Shown here one piece after another: positions 2,650 through 54,638 of a DNA stretch of 64,000 nucleotides. Where the stretch lies: contig NW_013657648.1 of NCBI RefSeq assembly GCF_000142905.1, forward strand, positions 62,001 through 126,000. The letters run 5' to 3'. Under the pieces are notes generated by a model. It did no database searches. It saw only the letters and a program-made list of their open reading frames with translations, and was not told the origin of the DNA. A program made the translations under genes and the position numbers. Numbering within the stretch: position 1 is the stretch's first letter; every line of letters starts with the position of its first letter. The DNA is from Thecamonas trahens ATCC 50062 (lineage: Eukaryota > Protista > Apusomonadida).

Positions 2650-2985
2650 CCGTCAGTCACCGCCTTTCTCCCGCCTTCCACGTCAGCCATGGCGCTGACG
2701 GTCCGAACCCGGAACCGTCGCCGAACAAGCCCCGCATGGCCACCCATACCACCGCACACACAGCCACAGCCATCACACACACCATCACAACACACACAAC
2801 CTCATCACACACGCTTCATACAACAACATACTCGATTTTGAACGCTTGCTTGGGCATGCTTGCCTCGCCTCGCTTAAAAAACGGCCCGCACCGGCTCGCT
2901 ACGCTTCCTTGCCTCTCGCGCGCACGAGAGAGAGAGAGTGAGAGACAATGACGCTTCCGAGTCTGTGGCAGCCACCTCGGCCCCA

Positions 2986-3477
2986 NNNNNNNNNNNNNNN
3001 NNNNNNNNNNNNNNNNNNNNNNNNNNNNNNNNNNNNNNNNNNNNNNNNNNNNNNNNNNNNNNNNNNNNNNNNNNNNNNNNNNNNNNNNNNNNNNNNNNNN
3101 NNNNNNNNNNNNNNNNNNNNNNNNNNNNNNNNNNNNNNNNNNNNNNNNNNNNNNNNNNNNNNNNNNNNNNNNNNNNNNNNNNNNNNNNNNNNNNNNNNNN
3201 NNNNNNNNNNNNNNNNNNNNNNNNNNNNNNNNNNNNNNNNNNNNNNNNNNNNNNNNNNNNNNNNNNNNNNNNNNNNNNNNNNNNNNNNNNNNNNNNNNNN
3301 NNNNNNNNNNNNNNNNNNNNNNNNNNNNNNNNNNNNNNNNNNNNNNNNNNNNNNNNNNNNNNNNNNNNNNNNNNNNNNNNNNNNNNNNNNNNNNNNNNNN
3401 NNNNNNNNNNNNNNNNNNNNNNNNNNNNNNNNNNNNNNNNNNNNNNNNNNNNNNNNNNNNNNNNNNNNNNNNNNNNN
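2986..3477. other. Assembly gap (N-run); others at 17768-17867, 28272-28993, 30672-30771, 35571-35670, 37509-37615, 42990-43089
   Basis: Runs of N, mostly flanked by poly-G/poly-C tracts. Confidence 1.
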
Positions 3478-3873
3478 ACCCCCCCCCCCCCCCCCCCCCC
3501 GCCACCCATTCCACCAATATCAACTGCCACACATTCGCAACGGCATCAATGAATGGCACCCCAGTTCCACACGACAACCGCCAACGAATCATGTCACGCT
3601 CACAAACTCGGTCCCCTCCCCCTCCCTCCCTCCTGACCTCCCCCCCCTCCCCCCCCCCCCCCGCTCCCCCCTCTTCCCTCCATCCTCCTCCTCCCCCCTT
3701 CCCCTCTCCCCTTCCCTCTCCCCCTCACCCGGGGCAATATAAAAAAAACACATACCTTCCACTCGAACGTCTCTCTTCTCCCGCACACCAAAAAAACCCG
3801 CACAAAAAACGACTGCCCACGATCCCTGCAGTCTCGCCCGCACACCTCCAACTCAACCCCCACTGCACCTCCC

Positions 3874-6800: not shown

Positions 6801-7947
6801 CCTTGTTCGCGGCTCGTCGGTCGCCGATGCCACCTCCCGACTCCACGCCCGCCTCGCCGCTGTCGGCCTCGGCGCCATCGCTGCCGACCCGGCCACCGCC
6901 GCCCGCGTCGACGTCATCCTCGGTGACCTCACCGCGCCCTGGCTCGGCATTGCGCCCGAGCTCCGCGCCACCCTCACAACGGAGCTCGATGAGATCTATC
7001 ACTGTGGCGCTCTTGTCCACTGGGTCTACCCCTACGAGCAGCTCCGCGCCGCCAACGTTGCCTCGGTCCAAGAGTGCCTCCGCTTTGCCGTCACCGGCCC
7101 GCGCGTCATTACCCTCCACTTTGTCTCGTCGACCTCGGTCTTCGACTCGGGCCCATACGCCCAGCGAACCGCGTCGGTCGCCGAAGACGATCCGCTTGAG
7201 CACTTTGATCAGCTCTCGGTCGGCTACGGCCAGTCCAAGTTTGTGGCTGAGACCATGCTCCGCACCGCCGCCACCCGCAACATCCCAGTCCTAATCCATC
7301 GCCCGGCTTACGTCCTCGGCGACTCGACCGCCGGCGCCACCAATGTCGACGACTACCTCATTCGCATGGTCAAAGGCTGCGTCGAACTCGGCGCCGCGCC
7401 CATCATGAAGAACCGAGTCTACGTCGCGCCCGTCGATTTTGTGGCAGAGGCCATGGTCCGCGTCGCAGAAGCCGGGCCGGACGCTCGAGGTCACGCCTAC
7501 CACTTTCTCTCACCCGACGTCTTTCGCATGGAGTCGATGTTCGACGCCCTTGCAGCTCTGGGCTACCCGCTCGAGCGCCTCGACTACGTCGAGTGGCGCG
7601 ATCGCCTCGAGGCCCGCGTCGTCGACGGTGGTCACTCGGAGTCGTCGACCGCCCTCTACCCGCTGCTGCACTTTGTCCTCGACGACCTGCCCACAAAGTC
7701 GATGAGTCCCGACCTGTGCATGGACAACGTGCCAGCCATGCTCGGCGACTCGTTTACCTGCACGCCCATGTCGCGCTGCTTCTACCGCTACATCGCCTTC
7801 CTCGTCACCGTCGGCTACCTCGACCCGCCGCCAAACGCTGACACCGCCAGGGTCGCGCTTCCGGTTGTCGACGTCGCCGCAGGCGCTAACGTCTTGCAGA
7901 TGCGCACCTCGTCAGTCGCCGCCGCTTCGTCGGCCCCATCCTCGTAG
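3874..7947 (+). CDS. LYS2: L-2-aminoadipate reductase (NRPS-like A-T-R enzyme, 1357 aa)
   Basis: A-domain motifs LSFTSGSTGIPKGV, SGIAHDPIQRD, NMYGTTETQRAV, YRTGDLGR, QVKIRGFRIEL. PCP motif GGHSL. Reductase motifs LLTGATGFVG and GYGQSKFVAE. C-terminal ALYPLLHFV as in fungal Lys2. Confidence 0.93.
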   Translation: MATPSNSLAYWLQRLQALPDVRLPCDFPRNHHAPVEADVVLSLAEPTCNALLRISLDTAVKPFHIVLTALAILLRKFTGDDDIVLGSSHDTNPLVLRLDLAPDNAPLTVAQLLTRIKDADDTARAHPIPFDELVDALRHRDDSLDSLFSIRFFNACEVSEQTEAAARAEWTIYIEHEPDTRRLLPLRLRIRYDSLLYTRARMVNALHQIDAIITAMAANLDGDLVDISPLTLRARAVLPDPTRPLSDTFVGPIVDFLARHAAATPDRPLLVEYPVVNDDTAAGALDPVTYTYAAIDAAANRVASALVAAGIVYGDVVALYAHRSSALVTAIFGILKAGAIFTVIDPSYPTARQRLYLEVAQPRAIITLSRAGPLAPDVVDFIDNELALKLIINALTPLADIPQLADADTDSPSVAIHADTFATLSFTSGSTGIPKGVLGRHVSLTHFTPWMAETFGLSASDRFTMLSGIAHDPIQRDVFTPVVLGASIHIPDSAHILTPGALAQWLADSASTVTHLTPAMGQLVTANAVLGPGVHLALSTAFFVGDVLTQRDVLRLQALCSEHFVTVNMYGTTETQRAVSYLAIDACPNNMALRKHVLGAGKGMCDVDLLVLVQDSAATWRLAAIGELGELFVRSPHLAYGYLGRDDETAKKFLANPFVDQLALARQPGDVAPLLRDRMYRTGDLGRFAADGSVECVGRADDQVKIRGFRIELKEIDAVLASHDCVRECITLVQRDSAEEKVLVAYFVPQVPDVYDIADIRVLLRSKLPSYSVPSVFMPLQSFPLTPNGKLHRAMLPAPDLTFALDTRAHHLSARESLVVSLFSDVLARPVGPETDFWDAGGHSLSATELTFRLRRELRTDIPLNALYQHPTPRALAAAVEAHMDASAVLLPQDQAAASPDAASSRAADLASQPPPELELEVEAALDPTLDATGRAWHAPSADDVAHVLLTGATGFVGAYLLAALLVRRPNATIHCLVRGSSVADATSRLHARLAAVGLGAIAADPATAARVDVILGDLTAPWLGIAPELRATLTTELDEIYHCGALVHWVYPYEQLRAANVASVQECLRFAVTGPRVITLHFVSSTSVFDSGPYAQRTASVAEDDPLEHFDQLSVGYGQSKFVAETMLRTAATRNIPVLIHRPAYVLGDSTAGATNVDDYLIRMVKGCVELGAAPIMKNRVYVAPVDFVAEAMVRVAEAGPDARGHAYHFLSPDVFRMESMFDALAALGYPLERLDYVEWRDRLEARVVDGGHSESSTALYPLLHFVLDDLPTKSMSPDLCMDNVPAMLGDSFTCTPMSRCFYRYIAFLVTVGYLDPPPNADTARVALPVVDVAAGANVLQMRTSSVAAASSAPSS

Positions 7948-7976
7948 ACAAATGAACCTCGAGCTACAGCCCGCAA

Positions 7977-10900
7977 TCACCACGACGACGTCGACATCGA
8001 CGACGACGCCGCGCCAAAGTCACTCAACGACGCCCGATGTTGCGGCACCGGCCAGCTCGGAATCATGGCTATCGACCCACGACGCTCGCCCCCGCTTGCG
8101 CCTCCAACGTGGCCCCATGGCGTCCGACCCTGCTCCATGTCACGATCAAAGACCCGGAGGCTCTCGCGCGCCCGAGACAGTCGCATACTCGCCGGAACAA
8201 TCCGCTTGAGGCTGCGGATCCACAACACGCAGACCGCCGAGAACGGAGCACAGGCCACAATGTAGATCGGAATGAGGACGTAGAAGAACGATGAGATCGC
8301 GCCCACAGAGTATGCCGCCACAAGCACCACCATCATCGTTGCGTACGCCACAATGCCGAGCACCGCCATGACAGCCTCCAGTGGAAAGTCCCAATACCCG
8401 TCGATCGACTGGTAGCAACACATCATGAGCCCGCCAATGAGCCAGAGGCCCGACTGGACAAAGAACGGTGAGAAGACTTCCCAGATGGTTGTCGACGGCG
8501 CGAGTTGGCCCTCGATGAAGAGCGTGACAAGCACGTTCGACGCAATCATGACGCCAAAAGTGAGGATGAAGAACAATGCGCACGCCGACTTGAAGAACGA
8601 GTCCCATCCGCCCTCGTAGAGCATGTCGTCCACCACCTCGGCAAAGGCCAAGAGCACAAGGGCCGCTACCGGGAGCTCTGCAATGTACGTCGGGATGAGC
8701 ACGACCGCCCAGTGCCAGTTGAGCAGGCCATCGAGCTTGCATGCGATAAAGACAAATGGGATGGCCACAAAGAGGAGTACAAGCCCAAAGCAGCACATGG
8801 TGCCAGCCTCATCGACGTCAACGTCAGGAAGTGCGTAGCCGCAGCAAAGCGTGATGAACAGGACCCCGAGTGCGGCGTAGAGAGGCGAGAACACTACGTT
8901 CCACGTCAGATCGATACTCCCGTCGAGTTGGAGTGCAAGGAGGACCGTAAATGCCACAACCGCCATCGCAACCACCAGACTGTAGCACGAGATTCCAGTC
9001 TGCCCTAATGCATCACTCCGCACGATTTGCGCCCGCTGAATCTGCTGCGAGCGATCGTTGCGCGCGTTGAGTATCGCCCGTCGTGCCATGGAATTTCTCT
9101 CCTCACGCTCGGCGCGCGCCTCTCGCGCCCGGATGGTGAGCACATAGTGGTAGCACGGCTCGCCCGGGAGCTTGGCACGCCATCCAGGCGTGACGTTTCG
9201 GGCCAGGAGCGCGCTCGATGTGGCCTCAAACTCAGCACTTGCCGCGTACCGCCGCCACAATACCTCATCCATGGCCACAATCCGCCAGGTGTGGCAGACA
9301 AAGACCGCCCGGCCGAGGTCTTCCGGCCGGAGCCACTTGAAGATCTCCAGCAGGAGCTCAACCGGCAAGTCGACCACCGTCGCCTCTCCGCTTGCTGCCC
9401 ACGACGGCACTCTCAAATCCGCAACCTCGTCATACTCGTCTGAGGTAGGCTCATCAGCCTCTTCTTTGCCCTTGCCCGTCGCCGCCGCGCCAGTGTCGCG
9501 CTCTGTCCGCCGCTTCTTCCGCCCACCCGTCTTGGCCCCGTACCAGTATCCGCGCGGCGTAAGCGGCGGGCGGGCGGTGACGCTACTCATCGACACGCCC
9601 GGGCCGAGCCAGCCGCCGTCAAAGTGAGTCAGCGTCGACGCCGCAACCTTTGCAAAGAACAGTCTGCGTGCAAAGTACTCCTCCTCGCGCTGGTCCTGCA
9701 GACTCAGGCTTCCCAACTCGCCTTTTTCTTCCTCCGGCAGCGAGTAGGTCTCGTACGTCCACGCGTCCTGGTCGTCGAGGAGCGCAAACTCGAGCGCAGC
9801 GTCGCCGTGCGGCGTCACCATCGACGACGTGCTGTACACCGAGATAGACTTGGCGGAAGACTCGCTGTCAGTGCTGATGCCGGCATGTTGCCGCTCGATC
9901 TGACGCAGCAACCGGGCCTGCTGCCGGACAATGTCCCGCGCTCTAGTCGCGCCAGCAGTCGACGACGGCGGCCGCCGCGGCACCCGGCGCCTGCCGCGGA
10001 GCCGCTTCATCCCGCTCGTTGTCGGCTTGATGCCAAACAGCAGCTCTTGGACTTTTCCGCGGTGGGCCACAAACCGCACACCGTGGTTGCCACGGACGGC
10101 CTCCTCGCTTGGACCGGCAAAGACGGCGTCATCGTCCTTCAGCGCCGCCACCGCCGATACGCCGTCAAGCGACGATGTACTCGACGTGAACACATCTTCC
10201 TCTGACGAGTCGTAGTCGGAGCTGTCTGGCGTGTGGCGCAGGAGCTCTTGCTGCTGCGCTGAGGCCGGGGCCGGAGGGGACGAAACTGCGAGCTCAACCT
10301 CGTTGACTTGGAGGCCCGACGACTCCGACGAGCCGAGCGCGTCACTCGGATCATACGCCTTGATGCCGGCAGCAATGCAAGCATCGCAGCGGAACCGGCC
10401 GGACTTGTCGCCGAGAGTAAAGACGTAGTCGCGGAACGACTTGACCTCGTCGCACCCCGGACACGCGACATGCTTGCCGCGCCGGACCGCGGCAACAAGG
10501 TTTTCGTTGCGAGCGATCCGCCGTTGCCTGCGGCGCTCCATCCGGGCTGCCTTGCGTTCAGCCTTGAGCGACATCAGTTCGGCCTTGTTCAGCAGCCGAG
10601 CAATCGGCGGAGGCGGGGGGAGCAGCACGCCATTCGCGTCGTAGCTCAGTTCGATGTAGTCAACCGGCGATCTCGGGACCATCAGTCGCTGCCGAAGTGG
10701 CGAGGCGGGTGGCACCTCTGCTTCGACTGCATCCTTGCCTGCAGCCGCATTGTTGCCCGCCACCGTTGCGCCTGTCGCCGCCGCGGCGCCTGTTGTCCCC
10801 GCGGCGCCTGTTGTTGCCCCTGACCTGTCCAACTCGGCTGAATCATCGCTCGCCGAGGGCTCGGCATCCGCAGCCGCAGTAGCCACAACCACAGCAGTCA

Positions 10901-27189: not shown

Positions 27190-28101
27190 CTACCGTGGCT
27201 TGTAGGCCACAATGCGCCGGACGAGGCTGCCAAAGTCGACGATGTGGTGCCAGAGCAGGGCGGTCACCCATGCAAGCGCGAGCGGTGAGGCGCACCACGA
27301 CCACGACGAGGACCGGAGGCCGGCAAGCGGCGTCGCGTCGCTGGCAAGGCGGATGCCGAGCCAGAGCGTCGACGCTAGCTTGGCCGGCACAAAGGCAAGG
27401 CAGGCCATGAGATCAAGAGCGAGGGCGACGGCGGAGGCACGCCACGCGGGCGGCAGGACCCAGCGCAGATGCAGCAGCGCGGTGTGGAGCTCGGCCGCGA
27501 GTGGGACGTAGGTAAACGGTGCCATGCCGCACGAGCCGATTGTCGCCAGAAACGCCACCAGACATGGCGCCGATGCCAGCCACCGCACGCGTGCCGCTCT
27601 TGCCGCCGCCCGCGCGCCCGCCGAGTCCGAGTCGGTGGCGAGCGGGGAGAAGGCGAGATGATAGACGGCGCCGCCGGCAGCAACTGCGGCGGGCACCCGC
27701 GAGAGGCCCGGCGCCCATCCGGCGAGATCGTTGGCCAGGTACGGTGCGGCGACAAAGTGGGCCGTGGCGAGGAGGCCCACCATGGCCGCCAGGCCTGCCG
27801 CCACCAGCGCCCCCGCCGCCGGGCCATGGGGCGATCCTCCACGACGAGCGTCCGATGGGGGGAGGCGAGTCGGTGGAAGCGGTGCGCACGATGCGCGGGC
27901 AAGGAGCAATGTCATGCGAGCCGCCGCAGTCTCTCCAGCCGCCACTGCCGCCACCGCCGCGGCAAAGCCCGCGGAGAGGACCAGCGCCACCGCCGCCGCC
28001 GTGAGCACGTCGGGTGCCGTGCATGTGCGCGACGCCGCCGCCGCCGCCACCGCCACCGCAGGGAGCGTGTATGCCCCGATGACCACAGACACGCCGACCA
28101 T
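27190..28101 (-). CDS. Multi-pass membrane protein, TLC-domain-like
   Basis: Several hydrophobic segments. LAAELHTALLHLRW resembles the TLC E-x-S/T-x-x-L-x-x-R-W motif. The 5' end lies near a gap, so upstream exons are possible. Confidence 0.5.
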   Translation of the reverse strand: MVGVSVVIGAYTLPAVAVAAAAASRTCTAPDVLTAAAVALVLSAGFAAAVAAVAAGETAAARMTLLLARASCAPLPPTRLPPSDARRGGSPHGPAAGALVAAGLAAMVGLLATAHFVAAPYLANDLAGWAPGLSRVPAAVAAGGAVYHLAFSPLATDSDSAGARAAARAARVRWLASAPCLVAFLATIGSCGMAPFTYVPLAAELHTALLHLRWVLPPAWRASAVALALDLMACLAFVPAKLASTLWLGIRLASDATPLAGLRSSSWSWCASPLALAWVTALLWHHIVDFGSLVRRIVAYKPR

Positions 28102-29296
28102 GTCCGGTGGCGAGGGGTGGCGGTCGGTAGCTGGTGAGCTGTTGCAGTCGCGTGAGCGCGAGCAGAGTGTGTCGTGGGTGGCGAGGGGCCAGTGAGGGGT
28201 GGCCGGCGGCGGGTGGGGGGTGGTTGATGAAAATATTTTACAGGGGTTGAGTAAGGGAGGGGGGGGGGGGANNNNNNNNNNNNNNNNNNNNNNNNNNNNN
28301 NNNNNNNNNNNNNNNNNNNNNNNNNNNNNNNNNNNNNNNNNNNNNNNNNNNNNNNNNNNNNNNNNNNNNNNNNNNNNNNNNNNNNNNNNNNNNNNNNNNN
28401 NNNNNNNNNNNNNNNNNNNNNNNNNNNNNNNNNNNNNNNNNNNNNNNNNNNNNNNNNNNNNNNNNNNNNNNNNNNNNNNNNNNNNNNNNNNNNNNNNNNN
28501 NNNNNNNNNNNNNNNNNNNNNNNNNNNNNNNNNNNNNNNNNNNNNNNNNNNNNNNNNNNNNNNNNNNNNNNNNNNNNNNNNNNNNNNNNNNNNNNNNNNN
28601 NNNNNNNNNNNNNNNNNNNNNNNNNNNNNNNNNNNNNNNNNNNNNNNNNNNNNNNNNNNNNNNNNNNNNNNNNNNNNNNNNNNNNNNNNNNNNNNNNNNN
28701 NNNNNNNNNNNNNNNNNNNNNNNNNNNNNNNNNNNNNNNNNNNNNNNNNNNNNNNNNNNNNNNNNNNNNNNNNNNNNNNNNNNNNNNNNNNNNNNNNNNN
28801 NNNNNNNNNNNNNNNNNNNNNNNNNNNNNNNNNNNNNNNNNNNNNNNNNNNNNNNNNNNNNNNNNNNNNNNNNNNNNNNNNNNNNNNNNNNNNNNNNNNN
28901 NNNNNNNNNNNNNNNNNNNNNNNNNNNNNNNNNNNNNNNNNNNNNNNNNNNNNNNNNNNNNNNNNNNNNNNNNNNNNNNNNNNNNNNNNNNNNTCACGCC
29001 ACGCCTGAGACGTGCACACGCCGGTGGCGTCCTCGAGGCCTCTCGCTGCGGTCGGCGCTCAAGGGACTACGCCGCCACGTACCGCCGGGCAAGAACGCCG
29101 CTGCCGACGCCACTGCTGCTGCCGAGCTGGCTCTGCCGCCGCCGGCAAGCCGTGGTGCGGCTGCTGGCCGGCGCGCCACCGGCCGGCGCAACGCCTCGGT
29201 CCGCAAAGAGGCCGCCAAGGCCCGCAAGGTGCGAAAGTGGAGCGCTGCTCATCCCGAGTGGGTTCCGTCATCCTCGTCGTCATAAGCTCGTGGAGC

Positions 29297-30482
29297 TCAT
29301 GCCTCGCCCTCGGCCGCAAAGTCCGAGATGGCACTGGCGACCGCGTCGGCCTTGTCGAGGGTGCGGGCAAGCGCAGCGGCGAGCGGGCCGGTCGCCTCGA
29401 GCGCCGCCATGAGGCCGGCCTTGGCCGACGCCAGCTCGGCGTCGGCGGCCGGCGCGTAGCCCGACGACTGGGCGCGGAGCATGTCCGGGTGAGTGAGCCC
29501 GACCTCAAAGTTGATCGACTCGTCCGGCGCGCGGTCGACCGTCTGCAGCAGCGTGTGGAGGCCGGAGCCTGCGTCGAGCGCGGCCTTGCGATCCTTCATG
29601 TTGTCGAGTGCAGCGTTGAGGTCGGCGAGCCGGTTGTCGAGCGTCCGCAACTGCGCTTCCTGTGCCGCGTGGGTGATTTTGAGCCCGGTCAGCTCTTGGG
29701 TGTTCTTAAGAAAGGTGGCCTCCAGCTCGCGGTTCGACTCATCGAGCAGGGCGTACACCGCCGTGTTGCGCTTGCCATACGGCACGGCAAGGCGGGCCAT
29801 CTTGGTGTCGAGCGAGACAATGAGCGAGTTGAGGACCGAGGTTGCCTCGGCGCGGCGGAGCGGCGGCGCCTCGTTGGCAATCGGCTCGACCAGCGACTCC
29901 ATGAGCGAGACGAGGAAGGCCCGGTTCGCCGTCGTCATCGGCCGCCACTTGGCTACCTTGGTCGACGTCACCGACTTCCACCGCGCGTGATCGTCGCGCC
30001 GGTTGCGCGAGCCGCGTGGGCGGCCTCGCCGGCGTGCCCGCCCGATCTCGTCATCGTCCGACTCGGCCGAGCCCGCCCGTGCCGATCCGGCCACCCCACC
30101 GGCATACTCGCTGCGCACGAGCCGGCCTCGCCCGACCAGTCCACCCCGGCCCGCCGGCGTGTACAGCTCGTCCTCAGGCCGACCCATGTACAGCCGGCCC
30201 ATCCGCGCCTCGCCGTCCGACGACGTATCCGACAGCAGCGCGTCCTGCGTCTCTAGCTGTCGCCCGCTCGCCCGCATGTTAAACCGCCCGGCCATGTCAT
30301 CCGCCTCGGACGACGACCGCGTCGACCGCTCGTCATCGTCCGACGACGAGAACCGCGGCCTGCGGACCGGAGCCGTCACCGCTGCGCCCTCGAGCCGAGC
30401 CCCGTCACCCACCAGCCGCGCATGCCTCGCATCCAGCCCATCCGACGCAGGCGAGTCTGTTCCCGTCCCCGTCCCCGTCTCG

Positions 30483-43354: not shown

Positions 43355-46300
43355 ATGCACACCCTCACACTGTGCTGTTTGGTGGTACTGGTGCTTGCAT
43401 GCCCAGCTCTGGCTACACTCAACATTCATATGGTACGCCTTTGGCCAATGGTCCTCGGTCCTTGGCGGCAGGAACAAGGTCCGGGCGCACCTGTTGGCTG
43501 CACGCCTTTTTGACGGCTTTTTCTGCACTTGCCGTCGCGTCCAACACAACCATCTACCAGCGACGAGGCCTTTTCTTCCCACTCCCTGATGTTCGTCTGA
43601 GTTCCTTTACAATGATGACCCTTCTTTGCTTGCCAAGGCCTGGTGTGCGCACCTCCATAGCTTGCACGCATCGCCTGCTCTGCATCTCACGCCTGGTCTC
43701 CTTCTCTTGCAGATCTGCCACACCCATGACGATGTGGGGTGGCTCAAGACGGTGGACGAGTACTATATGGGAGCCAACTCGTCGATCCAGCTGGCAGGCG
43801 TGCAGTACATTCTCGACTCGGTGATGCCTGCGCTGGAGGCGAAACCGGAGCGCAAGTTCATCTACGTCGAGCAGGCCTTTTTCCGCATCTGGTGGTCGCA
43901 GCAGGACGCGGCGATGAAGGCCCGGGTCCGCAAGCTGGTCGCCGACGGTCAGCTCACCTTTGTCGAAGGAGGCGACGTTATGCCTGACGAAGCCAACCCG
44001 ACGTTCTCCGACTGGGTCGACGCCCTCACCCGCGGCCAGCGGTTCCTGCTCGACGAGTTTGGGCCCGAGGCCTCGGTCGCCTCGTCGCAGGTCCTGTGGC
44101 AGATCGACCCGTTCGGCCACTCGCGGACCGTGGCGCTTGCCGCTGCGCTTGGTGGCGCCAACATCGGCGTCCTCGGCCGCATCGACTACCAAGACATGGC
44201 TCATCGCGAATCAACCAAGCGCATGGAGTTTGTGTGGAAGACCTCGCCGTCGCTGGCGAGCATGGGTCCCACCGCCGATCTCTTTACCCTGAAAACCTTC
44301 AACGGCTACGGCCCGCCCGATGGGTTCTGCTTTGACGTCGTGTGCGACGCGCCGCCGATCCAGGCTGATCCGCTCCTCGAGGACGTGAACATCAAGGAGC
44401 GCGCCGACGCCTTTGTCGCCGCCGCCAAGAACTGGGCCTCCGTCTATACCTCAAACAACGTCATGATGACCATGGGCTCGGACTTTCAGTACCAGGCCGC
44501 CAACATGTGGTTCAAGAACCTCGACCTACTCATGGGCTACATTCAGGACAACGCCGCCGCCTACGGCGTCGACATCTTCTACTCGACACCACAAAACTAC
44601 GCCGCGTATGTCCACGCTGCCAATCTCACCTACACGTACAAGACCGATGACTTTTCCCCTACGCCGATGCGCCCGCCGCGTACTGGTCTGGCTACTTTAC
44701 CTCGAGGCCGGCACTCAAGCGCTACGTCCGCTCCAACTCGGCCTATCTCCGCCTCTCGCGCCAACTCGAGGCTGCAGCCATGGCAGCCTCGCCATCGGGC
44801 CCGGTCGGCTCTACCGACGGTCTCTGGGACGCGGTCTCGGTCCTGCAGCACCACGATGCCGTGGCCGGAACCGAGAAGCAACACGTTGCCAACGACTACG
44901 CCAAGCAACTCTACATCGGCCACGCCCACGCCGACGCCCTCACCTCGGACGCCCTCGCCCGCCTCACCGAGCGTTCGTACTCGGGCCTCGTCTTTGACCA
45001 GTGTCGCCAGGCCAACGTATCTATCTGCGCCGCCACTCAGGGCGTGCCTGCCCGCGACGGGCCGGGCGTCGTCGTCGTCCTCTACAACCAGCTCGCCACG
45101 GCCACCAGTGTTTGGCACCGCCTCCCAGTCGACTCGACCGAGTGGGCGGTGGTCAACGCTACCTCGGCTCCGGTTCCGGCCCAGATCGTGGTCAACCCGC
45201 CGCCGCTCCCCGGCCGGCCGACTGCCTCCAAGTACACGCTGGTCTTCCACGCCGCAGACCTCCCGCCGATGGGCTATGCCACCTTCTTTCTGGTGCCTGC
45301 TTCGTCGGCGGCGCCGGCGGCTACGCTCGCTGCCCGCGCCGATGGCCCGCCGAATCCGGTAGGCAACGCTCACTTTGAGCTTACCTTCAGATCCGACGGC
45401 CTCCTGGCGGCATACACTGACAAGGCGCGCGGGCGGACAACCAAGCTTGTCCAGCGGCTGGCGTACTACAATGCTTCCGCTGGCGGCGAACAGCCTCATC
45501 CGCCGGTTCTCAACGAGTTCCAGGCCTCGGGGGCGTACATCTTCCGACCCAACTCGTCGGCGCTGTTCTCTACCGGGCACGCCGCCGGAGCCGACATCTC
45601 GGTCCAGAACGGCCCCTTTGGCGTCGAGATCCTTCAGCGCTTCTCCGACTGGGCCTACCAGCAGATCTTTGTCTACGCTGGCGAACTCGCACCTACCGTC
45701 GAGTACACCATCGGTCCGGTGCCCATTGCCGATGCCGACGGTAAGGAGGTGGTCACCGTCTTTGCCTCGGAGCTCGACTCGGGTGCTAACTGGCACTCGG
45801 ACGCCAACGCCCGCGAGATGATCGCCCGCCGTCGCAACTACCGTGCCACCTGGCAGCTCAACTGCACCCAGGCCATCGCATGCAACTACGTCCCTGTCAA
45901 CACTGCAATGTACCTTGAGGATGACGCGGCGCGCCTCACCCTTGTCACTGACCGCTCCAACGGCGGCTCGTCCATGGCGTCTGGCGAGCTGGAGCTCATG
46001 ATCCACCGTCGCTTGCTCTTTGATGACGCGCGCGGCGTCGGCGAAGCCCTCAACGAGACTGGCATCACTGGCAACGGCCTCATCATCCGGGCCCGCCACA
46101 TGTTCCACGTCGGTAGCCCCGAGTCTGGTGCCGACTTTCAGCGCCCGGCCGTTGCTCGCATCACCTACGAGCCGACCGCTTTCTTCGCCCCGCTCACGGG
46201 AACGCCCGCCGAGTGGGCCGTCGCTCATCGCACGGCCTGGTCCGGCCTCTCCGCCCCGTTTCCGCCCAACGTCTTCCTCCAGACCCTGCAGCTCCTTGAT

Positions 46301-46666
46301 CCAACCACCGTCCTCCTCCGCCTCTCGCATCGATACGCGCTCGGTGAGTCGGCCAAGTGGTCGCGCCCAGCCACCGTCAACACCACTGGCCTTTTCACCG
46401 CCTTTTCCATCACCGCATGGACCGAGCTCGCACTCACCGCCAACCAGCCTGTCGCCAACCTTCGCTCTCGGTTTGTCTGGAACTCATCCGGCGGGCCCGA
46501 AGCTGCCGTCGCTTCGCCACTGCACAGCGCCGTCAACCGTGCTTCTCCGTTCCGGCCCTCGCCGCATCGCCCAGATCGCGGCTACGGCACGGGCCCCTCA
46601 GTCGAGCTCCTCCCCATGGAGACCCGCACCTTTGAGCTCGTTGTCGAGTGGAAGCATGAGGCCTAA
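43355..46666 (+). CDS. MAN2B1: Lysosomal alpha-mannosidase, GH38 (exons 43355-43432 and 43713-46666; 1-nt frameshift near 44653)
   Basis: Signal peptide; spliced [37 protein letters not shown]; restored DDFFPYAD..YWSGYFTSRP; QHHDAVAGT; ELMIHRRLLFDDARGVGEALNE. About 1010 aa. Confidence 0.93.
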
Positions 46667-46876
46667 AGAGTGTTTCCCACCACCAGGCTTGGGCTGCCCT
46701 TGTCGGGCGCGCGCTAGCGGTCAGCGCACGAAACGATCTCTTCCAAAAACGTCAGCGTCCACAGCTCCAAAGACAGAAGCACGCGGCGAGGCGGCCAGGC
46801 GCCTTCCGCCAGCCACTCGCCACCAGTCAGCCGCAAGCAACCTCGCTGGAAGCCAGCTCTCTCTCCCTTTCCAAAC

Positions 46877-49800
46877 ATGGACAGCCTCTTCCTCGAGCTG
46901 CTCCAGCCACGCGAGCCACTACCTCCGTCGCTCCATGGCTCTGTCCCGTCGCGCCTGACCCTCGCCCGGCTGGTGGTTCGTGTGGCCACCTCGGCGTGGA
47001 CAGCACCGTGCGGGACGGTTCCAGAGACCTCGCTACGGGCAACTTTGGAGCATGCAGCCTCACATCTGCCGCAGGCTTTGGTTGCTGTGGACTTGCTGGC
47101 GCCAGCAGAAGGCGTTGTGGCCGACCTCGCCGCCCTGTTGGTCACCCCGCTCCGACCGGACTCGCCGCGCACGGCATGGGTCCACATCGCCCTGGCCTCA
47201 CTCCTTGCATCGGCGGCAGCATGCGCAGAGACGTGCTTGGAAGCCGCGCGCCCGCGGGCGGCGCAGGGTTTTCTATCGCTCGTCGAGCGGTATGCCGGCT
47301 ACGCCGACCGCACGCCAGAGGTGGTGGCCCTCGAGGCGGGAGTGCAGAAGCGGCTCGGCGACATCGAGATCGCGCTCTTCGACACACCGCAAGACACGCC
47401 GGGTGCCCGCGATGAGCCTCTCTTTCCCAGACTCGAGCAGCTTCGAGCCAACTCGCCGTTTGAGGCCCTGCCACCGCTCCCAGCCTATACCCGCATCGCC
47501 ATCCGGTATGCTGAGGCTGAGCGCCAGGCGACCGAGCATGCCGCCCAGCGCCGCCACCAGGTAGCGCTCCTCCGCAATGCCGGCATGTTTGAGCTCTTCC
47601 ACACCGACGCGTTTGACGTCGGGCTTTGGCCTGCCCGTCTCCATCGCGCGAGGCAGAACGTCGGCGAGCTGACGTTGGCAGCGGCGGCAGACGAGCTGCT
47701 CGCCCTCGCGGAGCGCACGTATCTGGCTCAGGCCTTTGACCTCGCGGTAGCGTTTGGGGCGCTGGCGTTTGAGGCTGGTATGGGCGGGGACGACGCGTGC
47801 TGGGGGCACGCCTTTCGGGCCCACGAGCTGCTTGCTGCTGCCGTCCGCGCGGCGCTTGATCCGAGCTCGTTTCGGCTGCAGTACTCCGAGTCGCTGCCGC
47901 CCCTGGAGCTGCCGTGGGCCGAGGCACGGGAGGGCCTGGCAGCGTCGCGCGAGAGTGTGGCAGACGCACCGTGGCTTGACCCGTCCATCCACGCCACCCA
48001 GCTGCTTGATGTCCACCTGCAGACTAGCGACCACCGGGTCGAGCTATTCCGAGCGCTCATTGCCGACGCGCTCGCCAGCGTCGCCCCTCCCCTCACAACC
48101 TACCATTCACGGTTCTCTCGCTCGGCTCGATGTCAGCCGGGGCCATGTCGATGTACTCGGACGTCGAGTTTGCCATTTTACACGGGGTGTGTGAGGCAAC
48201 GCCGTGGTTTGAGGAGGCTGTTCGATCACGGTTGACGGGTGCGTCTGCAGAGGTCTCGGCGGTGAGCTCGGCCAAGACTGCGGCGGTGCCGGAGAGCGTC
48301 GGCGCGCCGCAGCACGAGGTCGAGGCCGAGGCCGAGGTCTCAGCTCGTATCGAGGCCGAGCTCAAGGCAGAGTACCTTACCGAGCTAGAGGCCTGGTTCG
48401 AGGTCTTTGTCACTGCACTCGAGCTCAAGGTCATTGCGCTCGGCGAGACGTCGCCCAACGCCAACTCGGAACGGTGGTCACGCGGCTTTTGCTTTGACGA
48501 CGGCGGCAACACGCCGCTGGTCAAGGATCCCAAACTCATCCAAACGCCTGAGGGCATGGTAAGCCTTCTCTGGCCGCCCGGCTCCTACGTGCCGGACCTC
48601 ATGCTTGTTGGTGCGCTGCCGGACGCCGGGTTTCTCTTTGGCGACGTCGATCTGTACGACGAGTTCCACACGCGAATGAGGGCGCTTCTGGCCACGCCGC
48701 ATCCGACGCTCCGCGGCACGCTTGGTCAGGTCTATGGTGCTGTATTGCTGAAGGAGGCCCTCGGCGAGGGCTTTAAGCCCAAGTTCCTCTCCAGCGCCAC
48801 GCCTCTGCTTGACGTCAAGCAGTCGATGTATCGGTTCTGCTCGCTGGTTGTTTCGGGCATGGTCCGGCTCTTTGCGCGAGTGATCACGACGTCAAACGCT
48901 CGGCGGCCGGCGTACATCTCGCACCGGGTCCGAGTCCGGTCGCTGGTCGCGGACCGCGCGCTCGACGCCATCATCGGGCGGGCACTGTTGATGGGCATTG
49001 CGCTCGCTGCGCACCTCCGCAACAAGGCTCAGGCGTTGGCCGGCACCGAGGCCAATGTGGTGTACGCGAGCGAGGATGCTGTCCCGGCGGGGACCCGAGG
49101 CTACGTCGTGCCGCCCGGGGCGGTCGAGACCCTCGCACGGGTGTACCACGCGCACGTCGAGCCGGCTTGGCAGGCTGCTGTCGATTTCCACGACCAGCTG
49201 CTCGAGCTTGGCATCGGGCAAGTGGCCAGCGGCGCGCTCCACGAGGTAGCGTGGGAGTCGGGCGGTGGCGACGACACTGGGCTGCAGGTCTCTGCGCCTG
49301 TGCGGTTCCAACTCGCGCTGTCGGACACATCGCGGTTCGCGGAGGCTCAGGCCGAGCACGTGCTTGACCACGTAAGCGAGCGGTCTGAGCTTGGTACGCT
49401 CCTTCATGCACTCTCGCATACACTGCTGAGCATTTCGACAGCGGAGCCACCACGAGCGGTGGGAGGCGGTGGGCGGCGGGCTGAGGCGTCTGCTGCGGTC
49501 CACGTCTCGACCTGGCCGCTGGAGAGCAGCGGCGGCAACGGGCCGCCAGTGGTGGTGGAGCACGGCGTGGCGGCGTGGTGGACAGCTGTGCTTGCGTTTT
49601 CGCGATCGATCGACATCCGGTCGCGACGGTACCGGCTCCGCGTGTACCGGGAGTGCTTTGTGGGCAACGAGGCGGTGCGGCTGCTGAAGGCGACGTTCCC
49701 CGATGTCAACACAACCGGGCAGGCGCTGGCGGTGGGCAACACCATGATGCGCGAGGGCGTGTTCAGCCATGTGGTCGACAAGAAGCAGGTCTTCCGCGAC

Positions 49801-52800
49801 GGCCACTTTTTCTACCGCTTCTCCAAGGACCTTGATCTGGCTGCGATCGCGGCCAAGGCTCGGAGAGAGGAGCGGGACAGCCACAGCTCGCATCGGACGT
49901 CAACCGGGCTTGATGCGGCGCTGCTGCAGCAGCTCTCGCCGCTCATTGCGTGGATTGTCGACGCCGACCACACGCCGTGGCAGCTGCTCACCTCTGCTGG
50001 CCACGAGCCTGCGGCAGCCGTCGAGTCCCCTAATGTCCTTGATTCTGTGGTTGTCTCGGGCCTCTGGGGTCACGTGGCGGCACTCGACGCATGGTATCAG
50101 GCGTTGGTGACGTCCAAAGCCTTTCCGTCCGGCACCGCTGCACTCAAGGAGAAGCTCTGCACTGTGTGCCGGGCGCTAGCGGCGCACTTTACGGTCGCGG
50201 CTGAGAGCATGGGTGAGGTTGTAGCGACGCTTCGGACGCAGCCGGGCGAGTCAGTCGAAGCGCAAGCTGCGATGGCGGTGGCGCGGGATGCGGTGCAGCC
50301 ACACGTGGTGGTGCATGGTGTGACAAGTGGCGTGAGGGTACTGCGGGCGGGGGGCGACCAGACGCTAGTCGAGGCTGCGGTGCAGGGCAAGCTTGCGCTG
50401 AAGCCCATCCAGGCCTCGCCCGGATTTACGTATGCGATGCAGCTGTTCATTCCGCTCACGATTGCGGGCGGGGCAGCGCTGGACGAGCGAGTGCTGGCGG
50501 ACCTTGTCAAGGTGCAGCCGCGGCACAACGCGATGCGGATGAGCCCGAGCCGGGCGCAGGCGAGTGACCTCTTTCATGTTTTTGCCAAGTACCCGGGCGA
50601 GGAGTCTCTGCGCGCTGTACTGGAAGCGCGGCCTCACGGCGATGACGTGCTCTCGACCTCGTGGCTGCCGTGGCAGTACACGACGGCGTTCCTGCGGACA
50701 ACGCTGATGCAGCCGTCGTCGGCGTCTGCAGACGCGTACAAGGTGCGGTACATGAAGCGAGCCGATGGGAGCAAAGTGCCGATTGCGCTTCCGGTGGCGC
50801 ACTCGAACTTGTTTGCCGCCGACGCGTTTGGATGGGCAGCATCGCTCGGGCAGCGGCGCACGCTCTCGATTGCGCTCTGCTTTGACCAGATGCTGGCTCC
50901 GATGGACGAGGAGGCTATGAAGGCGTTCATGGACCGGCGGCCGCAGACGGTCATCTCGATGTGGCTTGCGGCCATGGACCGATATAATCGGCGGATCGAG
51001 GCCATGTTTACACTCTCGGAGCTCGACGACCTGTTTGCCGGCGGCGACGGGTCGCTGCTGCCGTTTTTCGTGCCTGCGGACCTTGTGCAGAACTTGTATG
51101 ATCGGTATGTACACATGCAGGCACTGCTTGCGTCTGCCGTGGACGCCGGGGCGCCACTGACGCACCTCGAGCTGCTTCTTGCGATTGATCCGGACATCGG
51201 TGCCATGTACCGCGAGGTGCTTGAGAGCGCACCAGGACCGCTGGCGCGGTATGCGGCGGCGGAGAAGAGGATGGCAGCGGCAGCAGCGGCGGTGCGTGTC
51301 CGGGCAAACTCAACAAGCCCGCGCGGAGCGCCTGCGTCTGCATGGGGCAAGTCGCGGCTCTCGAGCGTGTCGGCGTTTGTGGCTGACGGGCGGATGGAGC
51401 CGCAGGCGGTGCTGGGCAGCTTGCAGTTTGACAGCGCCGAGTCATCACAGATGGCGCTCGCTGGCGCGCGCGACTCGCTGGTGTACGGCAACGGGAGCGA
51501 GTTTGCGGCGCTGGGCGAGCTGGGTGCCAAGGAGAACGTGGTGCGGCTGGTCCCGTTTGCCAACCTCTCGCCTGGCGAGCAGGTCCGTGTGCTGGAGAAT
51601 GTGCGCGATACGCCGTTCGTCTCGCTCACGCTCCGCGGGTGCTCGGTCCTGCGGACGAGCGGCTGGCAGCGATTCTGGAGCACACGCCGCATCTGGAGCT
51701 TCTGGACGTCTCGTTCTCGAGCGGGCTTGTCTCGCCGACCGGCTCGTTGACGGAGATGCCCAAGCTGCACACGCTCGTTCTACGTGGGGTGACAACGCTT
51801 GCTGCGCTGGAGCAGAGGTCGCGGCGGTCGCGTTACCTACCTGCCCTCGCGCGGCTGGATGTGCGCGGATGCGGGGCGCTGAAGATGTTGGACATTCCCA
51901 AGTTCCCGCTCTCGATCCGGATCGACCCGTCGGGGCTGGCCAACATGGAACGAGTGCGGGTAGCCGGAGTCGAGTGGACGCTCGCGGTGTGCCTGGTGAT
52001 CAACACGCTCAACAACACGCAGGCAGACACGTTGCAGCTGGAGGATGTGAGCGGCGTGTCTGCGGCTGAGGTGCAGAGCCTTGTGGGCGTGGTCTCCAAG
52101 TCGCAGTTTGTCAACGCACTGATGCTCAACCGGGTGAGCTTTGCCGGCGGCGCCGGCAACTTGATCCCGCAGCTGATGCGGAGCGCAAACGCGCTCAAGT
52201 GCGTGACCATTTCCGGGTGCCGTGGGGTGGAACTTGCGGCAGTTGTGGCGGCTGCGACCGAAAGCGCGCATCTTCGCCAGCTCACACTGAGCGAGTTTGA
52301 CTTTGCGGCCGGCGGCGGGGCGCTGGTGCGGCAGTTTGATGCCATGCTGCAGGCGCGGTCGAGCCTGCGTGCGCTGACGCTGCGTGGGTGTGGGCTCAAT
52401 GGGTGCAGCAGGGTGCTCGCGGCGCTAGGACGGGTGCTTAACCGGCGCGGCGGGGGGCTCTCATCGCTGGATCTGAGCGACAACGGAATCTCGGGTCTCG
52501 GGCTCGCGGAGGTCATCTCGGGCCTGCTTGGGGGTGGCGAGGCGTCGGCGATGGGCGCACTGGGCATGATGCTGGGCTCTGCCATGTCGCGGGTGGGTGT
52601 AGGCGGGCGCAAGGTGAGCGGGGGTGGAAACTCTGGAGCTGTACACGGCACGTCGCTGACAACGCTTGTGCTCGACGGCAACGCGCTGGGAGGGCGCGAT
52701 CTTGGGGCGCTAGGCGGGGCGCTGGCGGCCAACTGCTCACTCACGGCGCTCTCCCTCAGCCGCAATCCGATCGGGGAGCATATGGCGTCGTTTGCGCGTG

Positions 52801-53267
52801 GGCTCTCGGGCAACACGCGGCTGACGACGCTCGAGCTCGACTCTGCGCAGCTTGGCGACGCCGGGGCGCTTGCGCTCGCCACGGCGCTCGCGGGCAACCG
52901 CGCGCTGCGGTGGCTCTCATTGCAGGCGAACCGAATCTCTGCCGATGCTGGAGCCGAGGTTGTGGCCGCGCTTGTCTTTGTCACCCACCTCAATCTCGCG
53001 TTCAACGGGTGGGGCGAGGAAGAGATGTTTGAGGCGCTGGCGGTGGTTGCCGCGCGGGTGAGCAGCGCAGGTGCCGAGTCTGACGACGACGACGTGTCTG
53101 AGGCATCTGACCCGGTCAGCGAGGGTGAGACTGGTAGCAGTAGCAGCGCACAGGCACCGAGCAGCGACCGCAAGCGGACAGTGTTTGTGGGAGAGTCCGC
53201 CGTGGTCGAGCTCCCGTGGGGCGTGGCGCAGCAAAAACCTGCGAAGAGTAGTTCCCAGAAGGAATGA
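46877..53267 (+). CDS. Large multidomain protein: helical N-terminus + GlnD/DUF294-like nucleotidyltransferase + DEP + degenerate kinase-like region + RNI-like LRRs (1-nt frameshifts near 48090 and 51650)
   Basis: Three overlapping co-oriented ORFs join if 1 nt is added at each junction. Restored PPP..FTVLSLGSMSAGAMSMYSDVEFAIL. DEP IRSRRYRLRVYRECFVGNEAV..FRDGHFFYRF. LRRs LSSLDLSDNGI, LTALSLSRNPIG, LRWLSLQANRI. Confidence 0.75.
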
Positions 53268-53363: not shown

Positions 53364-54638
53364 ATGGCCGACACTGTGGATCTCAATGAGATCACCGAGT
53401 ACTTTGACGACGAAGAGGTGCTAGCGGACAAGTGCCGCGAGCTGGCTGGCCTGATTGCGCAAGCGCGCAAGGGTTACTTTTTCACGGGCGCGGGCCTCTC
53501 GACGTCTGCGGGCATCTCCGACTACCGTGGGCCAAACGGGGTGTGGACGCGGAGGGCGCAGGGGCGATCCGCCCCGCGCGGGGTGAGAATCACACAGGCG
53601 ACGCCGACGTACGCGCACATGGCGGTGGCGGCGCTTGTGGAGACAGGGGAGATGCGCGGAGTGGTGAGCCAGAACGTCGACGGCCTGCACCGGCGATCGG
53701 GGGTGGCGCGGGCGGACATCGCCGAGCTGCATGGCAACTGCTACCTTGAGGTGTGCTGGAAGTGCGAGATGGAGCACCTACGGACGTTTGACGTCTCCGA
53801 GCGAATCAATGGGTCTGGGCGGTGCAAGGAGTGCGCCAAGCGGGTACCACACTTTTGCCACTGCACCTCGCGCAAGTGCGGTCGCCGCGGGTGTGGGGCG
53901 GTGCTCAAGGACTCGATCATCCACTTTGGTGAGAATCTGCCCGAGGGAGATCTGGAAAAAGCATTTGCGTGGGGCCGCAAGGCGGATCTGTGTGTGGTGC
54001 TCGGCTCGTCGCTGCGGGTGACGCCGGCGGCGGACGTGCCAGCCGAGACGGCGGGGCGCGGCGGAGATCTGGTCATTGTTAACCTGCAAAAGACACCGCT
54101 TGACGACGAGGCTTCGCTCATCATCCGCGGGCGCATCGATGATGTGATGACGCGAGTGATGGCGGAGCTTGGGCGGAGCGACGAGGTGCTCCCGTTCTAC
54201 GAGTCGCCGGCGGCCGTTGCCGAGGCGGCGCGGATGGGTGTGCCCCCGCCGCCGGCCGCAGTGGCGAGGATGGATGGCGCCGCAGCCGCGCCAAGCTGTC
54301 CCGACACGCTTTTTGTTGGCAACACGGCGAGGGCGAGCAAGAAGAGCCGCAACACCAAGTGGACTGTGTACGTCCGCCCGGCAGTGGCTGACGCGCCCGA
54401 TGGCACCGCCGTCGACGACATCATCGAGACCGTAGAGTTTGGTCTTCATTCTACCTTTTCCCCATCGCAGATTGAGGTGAGCCAAGCGCCGTACGAGATC
54501 ACCCGCGTGGGGTGGGGCACCTTTGACGTGAAGATCCGAGTCCGCTTCCGCCCCGAGACCGGGCGAGCGCCGCTCGCGCTGGTCCATCCGCTCTCGTTCT
54601 CTGCCGGTGGATCGCAGGCTGATGTGGCGCTAGAGTGA
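53364..54638 (+). CDS. Class IV (SIRT6/7-like) NAD-dependent deacylase fused to a C-terminal YEATS domain
   Basis: Sirtuin motifs FTGAGLSTSAGISDYRGPNGVWT, SQNVDGLH, ELHGN, LGSSLRVTPA, IVNLQKTPLD. YEATS motifs VGNT..KWTVYV..VEFGLHSTF..PYEITRVGWGTFDVKIRVRF..HPLSF. Confidence 0.9.
   Translation: MADTVDLNEITEYFDDEEVLADKCRELAGLIAQARKGYFFTGAGLSTSAGISDYRGPNGVWTRRAQGRSAPRGVRITQATPTYAHMAVAALVETGEMRGVVSQNVDGLHRRSGVARADIAELHGNCYLEVCWKCEMEHLRTFDVSERINGSGRCKECAKRVPHFCHCTSRKCGRRGCGAVLKDSIIHFGENLPEGDLEKAFAWGRKADLCVVLGSSLRVTPAADVPAETAGRGGDLVIVNLQKTPLDDEASLIIRGRIDDVMTRVMAELGRSDEVLPFYESPAAVAEAARMGVPPPPAAVARMDGAAAAPSCPDTLFVGNTARASKKSRNTKWTVYVRPAVADAPDGTAVDDIIETVEFGLHSTFSPSQIEVSQAPYEITRVGWGTFDVKIRVRFRPETGRAPLALVHPLSFSAGGSQADVALE

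Follow-up and report, generated by a model that had tools for sequence, protein, structure and literature searches.

We have analysed a window of 64,000 nucleotides from Thecamonas trahens ATCC 50062 (contig NW_013657648.1, positions 62,001 to 126,000 of the forward strand), with attention to the gene AMSG_06988, which occupies positions 46877-53267 of the plus strand of this window. Our analysis shows that three open reading frames (ORFs) at this locus are one intact Thecamonas gene. It further suggests that the gene product carries a predicted nucleotidyltransferase (NTase) head resembling the adenylyltransferases DrrA and GlnE, followed by a DEP domain, a probable pseudokinase and leucine-rich repeats (LRRs).

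Gene structure and frame breaks

The locus presents itself as three ORFs on the plus strand, at 46877-48235 (frame 2), 48130-51750 (frame 1) and 51639-53267 (frame 0). At each of the two junctions the adjacent frames are both open, and therefore a one-base shift joins the ORFs without meeting a stop codon. With the two missing bases restored, the corrected ORF has (6391+2)/3 = 2131 codons, stop included. The features of the gene and of its public model are as follows.

46877-53267, plus strand: the whole gene AMSG_06988, a single ORF once the two missing bases are added (ORF list and contig comparison)
48080-48168, plus strand: false GT-AG "intron" 1 of the public model, 89 nt, which spans a missing base and removes the catalytic motif
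48088-48089, plus strand: break 1, where one C of a C-run is missing from the assembly (contig of run X2 with an extra C)
51619-51659, plus strand: false GT-AG "intron" 2 of the public model, 41 nt, which spans a missing base
51651-51652, plus strand: break 2, where the assembly is one base short (extra A in contigs of runs X1, X2 and X4; loose end in X3)

Evidence for the missing bases comes from contigs of four public sequencing runs, which were compared with the assembly over 47500-52500 (5001 letters): an estuary metagenome (X1), a 2020 run of the organism itself (X2), a run from 2010 (X3) and a marine metagenome (X4). The X2 contig spanning 47500-48357 carries one additional C behind 48088, within the C-run, and the X1 and X3 contigs end exactly there, as contigs usually do at homopolymers. 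Behind 51651, one additional A is present in the X1, X2 and X4 contigs, with which the loose end of the X3 contig is consistent. At the level of these contigs, no spliced joints were found across 47500-52500 in any of the four runs. The extra bases, together with the lack of joints, indicate that the frame changes are assembly errors rather than introns or mutations. Both frame changes are thus bases missing from the assembly, break 1 on the evidence of one contig. This agrees with a first-pass annotation of the same DNA, made by a model from the letters and an ORF list, which had proposed that the three ORFs form one gene with one base missing near 48090 and another near 51650. The two frame changes in the assembly as given could still be taken to mean a frameshifted pseudogene or three separate genes. 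This explanation, like that of a bacterial contaminant considered below, is already largely refuted and hardly credible to us, given that the missing bases are present in contigs of two metagenomes and of a later run of the organism.

The region 47500-52500 is present at about 99% identity in estuary and marine metagenomes (X1, X4 and X10), which shows that the sequenced strain has close relatives in the environment. The variants in the metagenome contigs comprise 9 synonymous and 10 non-synonymous changes, where chance would give 26% synonymous (p 0.04), a pattern that lends mild support to constraint on the protein.

The first-pass annotation had described this gene as hidden, which does not hold. 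The translated ORFs match an already annotated database protein of T. trahens, AMSG_06988 (P0001), at 100% identity; it also has a paralog of 45% identity, AMSG_09190. The expectation that ORF-based annotation would miss the catalytic motif was correct. The public model, a protein of 2086 amino acids labelled "DEP domain-containing protein", jumps relative to the DNA from "...ADALAS" to "FAILHG..." and from "...VRDTPF" to "RLAAIL...", and it omits the catalytic motif (G-x11-D-x-E) because the 89-nt false intron at 48080-48168 covers it. We considered whether these could be real short introns and rejected this, since both stretches left out by the model continue the reading frame of the exon behind them and code for the most conserved motif of the family and a regular LRR, and since the other contigs show single extra bases instead of joints. 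The model of the paralog AMSG_09190 (P0002, 2269 amino acids; G000:C45:255000-264999, minus strand, about 2301-9279 within that stretch) contains four "introns" of 56, 32, 52 and 32 nt, none of them a multiple of three, which look like more indels of the assembly that the gene caller has spanned. In general, this annotation seems to deal with indels by inserting tiny introns. The lesson for users of the Thecamonas assembly is that tiny false introns bridge its indel errors, and that one of them erased exactly the catalytic motif.

The nucleotidyltransferase head

The head of the protein is encoded directly behind break 1, and its features are the following.

48091-49257, plus strand: predicted DrrA/GlnE-type adenylyltransferase fold with a HEPN-like helical half, model residues 1-389 (AlphaFold2 (AF2) model, Foldseek, VIA-align)
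48124-48168, plus strand: G-S-x10-D-x-E catalytic motif GSMSAGAMSMYSDVE, which aligns to GSLAKAQATEYSDLD of DrrA
48439-48519, plus strand: second conserved block, LGET...GFCFDDGGNTPL, whose G, D136, GGN and P show no or almost no variation across the family
48811-48834, plus strand: DVKQSMYR block of the helical half, with Lys243 and Arg248 invariant, which aligns to "VKthimR" of DrrA

All searches and fold predictions were run on the separate ORF pieces of AMSG_06988 rather than on the joined corrected protein. A word-indexed homologue search returned AMSG_06988 itself as the sole match, and comparisons of the NTase, N-terminal and middle pieces with Pfam, NCBIfam and, by phmmer, the PDB matched only the DEP domain and the LRRs. 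A HMMER scan of 1.8 billion representative proteins yielded 82 relatives of the NTase piece, with the paralog from Thecamonas scoring best (E 1e-56, 45% identity). The motif GSMSAGAMSMYSDVE fits the pattern h-G-[GS]-x9-13-D-h-[DE]-h and aligns column for column with 60 relatives. The blocks common to the relatives and the query read "LGS....M..YSD.EFA.L", "LGET ... GF.FDDGGNTPL" and, later, "VK..LYR", and every family-invariant position (G-S, S-D-x-E, D136, GGN-P, K243 and R248) is retained in the window protein; the motifs quoted in the first-pass annotation are all present in the translated ORFs. Among 19 short relatives, 15 exceed the Pfam cut-off for DUF294, 11 that for DUF294_C and three that for SidM_N. 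A profile built from trimmed NTase segments (A4) matches DrrA with an E of 2.9e-11, its motif aligned to GSLAKAQATEYSDLD and its "VK..LYR" to the helical domain; an earlier, untrimmed profile (A1) was dominated by tetratricopeptide repeat (TPR) matches in the PDB, and A4 was built on trimmed references. Language-model features also indicate the NTase class for the head.

The fold prediction points to the same class. The AF2 model of the head, a predicted and not a solved structure, was built on a 64-sequence alignment and has a predicted local distance difference test score (pLDDT) of 80 and a predicted template modelling score of 0.76. Foldseek gives it a single match below an E of 0.001, namely DrrA in complex with Rab8a (6yx5_B, E 1.3e-5, probability 1.0), and the next matches are both GlnE adenylyltransferase domains. 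VIA-align places DrrA at Z 20.4 over 264 residues (3.8 A), GlnE at Z 14.9 and 14.4, and HepT HEPN toxins at Z about 8, the latter on the helical half (residues 213-370). The model shows an NTase core followed by a helical substrate-binding domain of HEPN-like type (KNTase_C clan), suggesting that the head folds as a pol-beta-type NTase of the GlnE/DrrA adenylyltransferase class. The pol-beta fold that the first-pass annotation had required at 48090-49070 is thereby predicted by the AF2 model. Its assignment of the head to the GlnE/DUF294 class with a helical substrate-binding half is borne out by the Pfam matches of the relatives, by the profile and by the fold, and can be made more precise, in that the head appears DrrA/SidM_N-like.

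An active head of this fold would not have to be a protein AMPylase. It could instead transfer GMP, UMP or CMP, modify small molecules or nucleic-acid ends, or make a nucleotide messenger, since the pol-beta NTase superfamily includes all these chemistries; the segment from GS to D is also unlike the canonical "GR.E" form of DUF294, and the Hailong oligonucleotide synthase HalB matches the fold weakly (Z 6.9). However, the protein-modifying DrrA and GlnE are closest by profile and by fold, well ahead of others, and DrrA too has the HEPN-like half and the invariant Lys and Arg in it, so that we regard these other activities as quite unlikely.

The Arg and Glu that are typical of DUF294 between GS and SD are absent from the window protein, and the first-pass annotation had cautioned that the Ala residues found there might impair catalysis. 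Both residues are also absent from DrrA in the family profile alignment, and from a clade with a Shimodaira-Hasegawa-like approximate likelihood ratio test (SH-aLRT) support of 99, which comprises both Thecamonas copies, P0003, P0004, P0005, P0016 and P0028. DrrA is an active AMPylase (PMC3710099, PMC12409994). Because the same loss is seen in an active enzyme and in a whole well-supported clade, we rejected decay as its explanation, and the caution becomes moot. The loss could also have been tied to the presence of the kinase module described below; this was rejected as well, since P0033, P0052, P0056 and P0073 have the kinase module yet retain Arg and Glu.

The kinase-fold module and the other domains

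The regions on either side of the head comprise the following features.

46877-48079, plus strand: N-terminal Ala/Leu-rich region of about 400 amino acids, conserved in the paralog only (E 1.9e-9)
49609-49821, plus strand: DEP domain (PF00610, E 1.2e-16; ORF2 residues 494-564)
50257-51279, plus strand: kinase fold like that of type II phosphatidylinositol 4-kinases (PI4KII), predicted pseudokinase (AF2 model, fold matches, alignment)
51654-52950, plus strand: leucine-rich repeats of the ribonuclease inhibitor (RNI)/LRR_6 type (Pfam and repeat cores)
52951-53267, plus strand: acidic, Ser-rich C-terminal tail and stop codon (ORF3 translation)

The first-pass annotation had described the order of modules as NTase, DEP and LRR. 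These three modules are present in that order, and a kinase fold between the DEP domain and the LRRs had been missed. Residues encoded from about 50596 to 51648 are homologous to a module that lies behind the NTase in P0002, P0004, P0005, P0016, P0033, P0052, P0056 and P0073. This module has no Pfam match at E up to 5, and its profile (A3) has no PDB match at E up to 10. Its AF2 model has a pLDDT of 60. In Foldseek, PI4KIIalpha leads with an E of 1.4e-3; in VIA-align, PI4KIIalpha reaches Z 9.6 (240 residues) and Z 9.3, and the top 30 rows are all kinases. Both aligners give only kinases, which further include actin-fragmin kinase, PI4KIIIbeta, Vps34, Fam20, CtkA, MavQ and HipA. The list consists of atypical or lipid kinases throughout, and the module is predicted to have a bilobal kinase fold. 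Language-model features suggest LepB_N.

The bacterial members retain a Lys, "PED....N" and "(I/V)DNDH", and the window copy reads PSS....A and PVAHS in an alignment of about 20% identity. In the paralog the Asp of PED is lost, and the DNDH stretch falls at a break of the model where it could not be read. Since Lys, Asp, Asn and DNDH are all replaced in the window copy, the module is probably a pseudokinase, a call that we make provisionally. One may go further and suppose that both enzyme-like modules are inert and that the protein is a scaffold of DEP domain, LRRs and helical regions. Such a scaffold would fit a kinase-like module that has no catalytic residues and a head that misses the Arg and Glu of DUF294 and itself falls below the threshold of all Pfam NTase models. 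Nevertheless, the (nearly) invariant positions of the NTase family are all retained in both paralogs despite their 45% identity, and DrrA is active likewise without Arg and Glu. We therefore consider a scaffold unlikely.

The DEP domain, which had been placed at about 49610-49820, matches PF00610 with 60.8 bits against a cut-off of 32.7, and the match spans positions 2-72 of the 72 in the profile. LRRs of RNI type make up the C-terminal 540 residues, as had also been proposed: in ORF3, LRR_6 scores 37.8 bits (cut-off 23.4) and LRR_1 33.4 (cut-off 20.6), with repeated L..L.L..N/C..L cores. A match to PF27087 was considered as a hidden novel domain and rejected, this being the LRR family LRR_TMOD-LMOD. 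The N-terminal region has no family match in Pfam, NCBIfam or the PDB. Scanning every piece and P0001 with Pfam revealed no NACHT, NB-ARC or TIR-type module. The suggestion of an innate-immune-like receptor thus finds no such module in Pfam, and the LRRs are the sole trait in its favour.

Relatives and genome context

Thecamonas has exactly two copies of the gene, the second of which (AMSG_09190) lies on another contig (C45). The named relatives of the NTase all come from Parachlamydia metagenome-assembled genomes (MAGs). A scan of GTDB for the FDDGGNTPL-type pattern gave at least 13 loci, all in Chlamydiae and 11 of them in one Parachlamydia MAG; the scan used one genome per species and the exact pattern, and is hence a lower bound. 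In this MAG, Parachlamydia sp. bin.582 (JAJFUZ01...), at least 11 DrrA-like NTase loci (L011-L022), most of them fused to TPRs, form a large lineage-specific expansion. The seven relatives whose contigs were read all lie among ordinary bacterial genes (EF-Ts, HipBA, MoxR/BatA, Ku/LigD and folate genes), and relatives on bacterial-looking contigs are fused to WD40, TPR, Ank, Ras/Roc or OTU domains. In P0056 and P0073 the NTase-kinase pair is fused to Ras/Roc GTPase domains. Two bacterial-looking giants (L006:946-6747 and L007:2444-9628) combine the NTase-kinase cassette with Ras/Roc and ankyrin repeats, one of them with an N-terminal OTU protease.

That the relatives outside Thecamonas which can be placed all look bacterial would be expected if the gene were a bacterial contaminant. 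Against this, AMSG_06988 lies on a 401-kb contig beside a SIR2-YEATS fusion and an ankyrin-repeat protein, the GC content is even across the region and equal to that of the host, and a second copy is found on another contig. The eukaryotic neighbours, the host GC and the DEP domain therefore argue that the gene is not contamination. These data agree with the earlier proposal of a bacterial-type catalytic domain in a eukaryote, the neighbours being eukaryotic and the relatives elsewhere bacterial-looking or chlamydial.

In a tree made by a quick method and rooted at the midpoint, in which the two Thecamonas rows deviate in composition, the two copies are sisters within a bacterial clade. An exchange between chlamydiae and the protist is likely, and the tree favours passage from a chlamydia-like bacterium to the protist, followed by gain of the DEP domain and duplication.

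Some further observations concern the surroundings of the gene. The downstream SIR2 (sirtuin)-YEATS fusion is an ORF of 424 amino acids at 53364-54638 on the plus strand, with both Pfam domains above threshold. Two 2-kb bins of the window, 2001-4000 and 28001-30000, have about 45% GC, and the rest about 65%. Near 46-48 kb the cumulative GC skew changes direction; there a minus-strand ORF at 44630-46330, which has no Pfam match, and AMSG_06988 diverge (gap about 46330-46877).

Discussion

The explanation that we favour, and consider reasonably probable as a whole, is that AMSG_06988 is one gene for a large cytosolic multidomain signalling protein, in which a DrrA/GlnE-type head with intact motif, a DEP domain, a dead kinase fold and LRRs are combined and which would transfer AMP or another NMP to protein. 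The modules are, in order, a helical region of about 400 amino acids, an adenylyltransferase made of an NTase core and a HEPN-like half, the DEP domain, the PI4KII-like dead kinase fold and the RNI-type LRRs. By analogy with DrrA and GlnE, the head may move AMP or another NMP from an NTP to a hydroxyl side chain of a target protein, while the DEP domain may place the protein on a membrane, and the pseudokinase and the LRRs may serve as binding or regulatory modules for target choice, control of the head or autoinhibition. DrrA AMPylates Rab1. Because of this, and because two relatives fuse the cassette to Ras/Roc domains, we speculate that the head most likely targets small GTPases. Exchange of the NTase-kinase pair with amoeba-associated chlamydiae, in which the family expanded, is probable, and the protist lineage may later have gained the DEP domain and then duplicated the gene. 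Domain order, fold classes and motif conservation are what our analysis provides, and the AMPylase function would follow from the likeness to DrrA and GlnE.

Several points weigh against this explanation or parts of it. The Thecamonas NTase piece is under the threshold of every NTase model in Pfam (DUF294, DUF294_C and SidM_N) and NCBIfam, and its membership is therefore transitive, by way of the relatives, the profiles and the predicted fold. Break 1 is bridged by a single contig of low depth (X2, depth 2.6), the absence of splicing applies to contigs and not to RNA, and the excess of synonymous variants is only mild. The dead-kinase call is provisional, with a model of pLDDT 60 and an alignment of about 20% identity. 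The direction of transfer is tentative, the tree being quick and midpoint-rooted and its Thecamonas rows compositionally deviant.

Among characterised systems, the nearest to the Thecamonas head is the N-terminal adenylyltransferase of DrrA/SidM of Legionella pneumophila (SidM_N PF20879; PDB 6yx5, 3nku and 3l0i). The two are alike in fold, in a G-S-x10-D-x-[DE] motif without the Arg and Glu of DUF294, and in a conserved Lys...Arg block in the helical half. However, DrrA is a secreted bacterial effector with Rab guanine nucleotide exchange factor and phosphatidylinositol 4-phosphate-binding domains, whereas the Thecamonas protein is encoded by a gene of the eukaryote itself and carries the DEP domain, the pseudokinase and the LRRs. 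The DrrA motif ends in D-x-D and that of Thecamonas in D-x-E, the Thecamonas protein has a helical insert of about 60 residues behind the motif, and identity between the two is 12-14%. GlnE and the DUF294 (PF03445)/DUF294_C (PF10335) proteins share the pol-beta NTase core and the helical substrate-binding domain. Unlike them, the Thecamonas protein has no tandem adenylyltransferase domains, no PII or CBS/cNMP context and no "GR.E" signature, and it stays below the Pfam thresholds.

Giant proteins with NTase, kinase and repeats are also found in Parachlamydiaceae and other bacteria (for example MCE5317408, P0004, P0005, P0016, P0056 and P0073), themselves known from sequence alone. Their NTase is homologous (E down to 1e-27), eight of them have a homologous kinase-fold module behind it, and their C-terminal repeat domains vary. 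They differ from the Thecamonas protein in that their kinase catalytic motifs are intact, they have no DEP domain, and TPR, WD40, Ank, Ras/Roc and OTU domains stand in place of RNI-type LRRs. The kinase fold is like that of PI4KIIalpha (Z 9.6) and of the Legionella lipid-kinase effectors (LepB_N PF18640; MavQ, Z 6.0). This likeness comes from a low-confidence model, there is no match at the level of sequence, and Asp, Asn and DNDH are replaced in the window copy. Large proteins with LRRs and a kinase-like module, some of them with a DEP domain, are found among the Roco proteins of Dictyostelium, and NLR-type receptors have LRRs of RNI type. In contrast to both, AMSG_06988 has no Roc-COR, NACHT or NB-ARC module in Pfam scans, and its enzymatic head is an NTase by prediction.

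Each component (enzyme class, DEP domain, LRRs and kinase fold) is already known, and what appears new is their combination, its occurrence in a gene of the eukaryote's own and the chlamydial NTase-kinase cassette. We found no description in the literature of the combination, of a eukaryotic occurrence or of the NTase-kinase cassette in chlamydiae, in line with the earlier statement that no described protein with this architecture was known. The AMPylases known from eukaryotes are of the FIC-domain (FICD) and kinase-fold (SelO) types. A 2025 review lists adenylyltransferase-class AMPylases (GlnE, SidM/DrrA) from bacteria only (PMC12409994). We propose tentatively, as a possibility somewhat short of an even chance, that Thecamonas has an active endogenous AMPylase of DrrA/GlnE type, placed by its DEP domain and controlled by its pseudokinase and LRRs, and that the cassette represents a family of GTPase-targeting effectors in amoeba-associated chlamydiae. 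If this is true, AMSG_06988 would be the first adenylyltransferase-class AMPylase in a eukaryote's own signalling and the third class of eukaryotic AMPylase, and the NTase-kinase cassette would define a large undescribed effector family in these chlamydiae. The gene links a domain of a Legionella effector to a wider family in chlamydial symbionts and a protist, which bears on the origins of effector domains.

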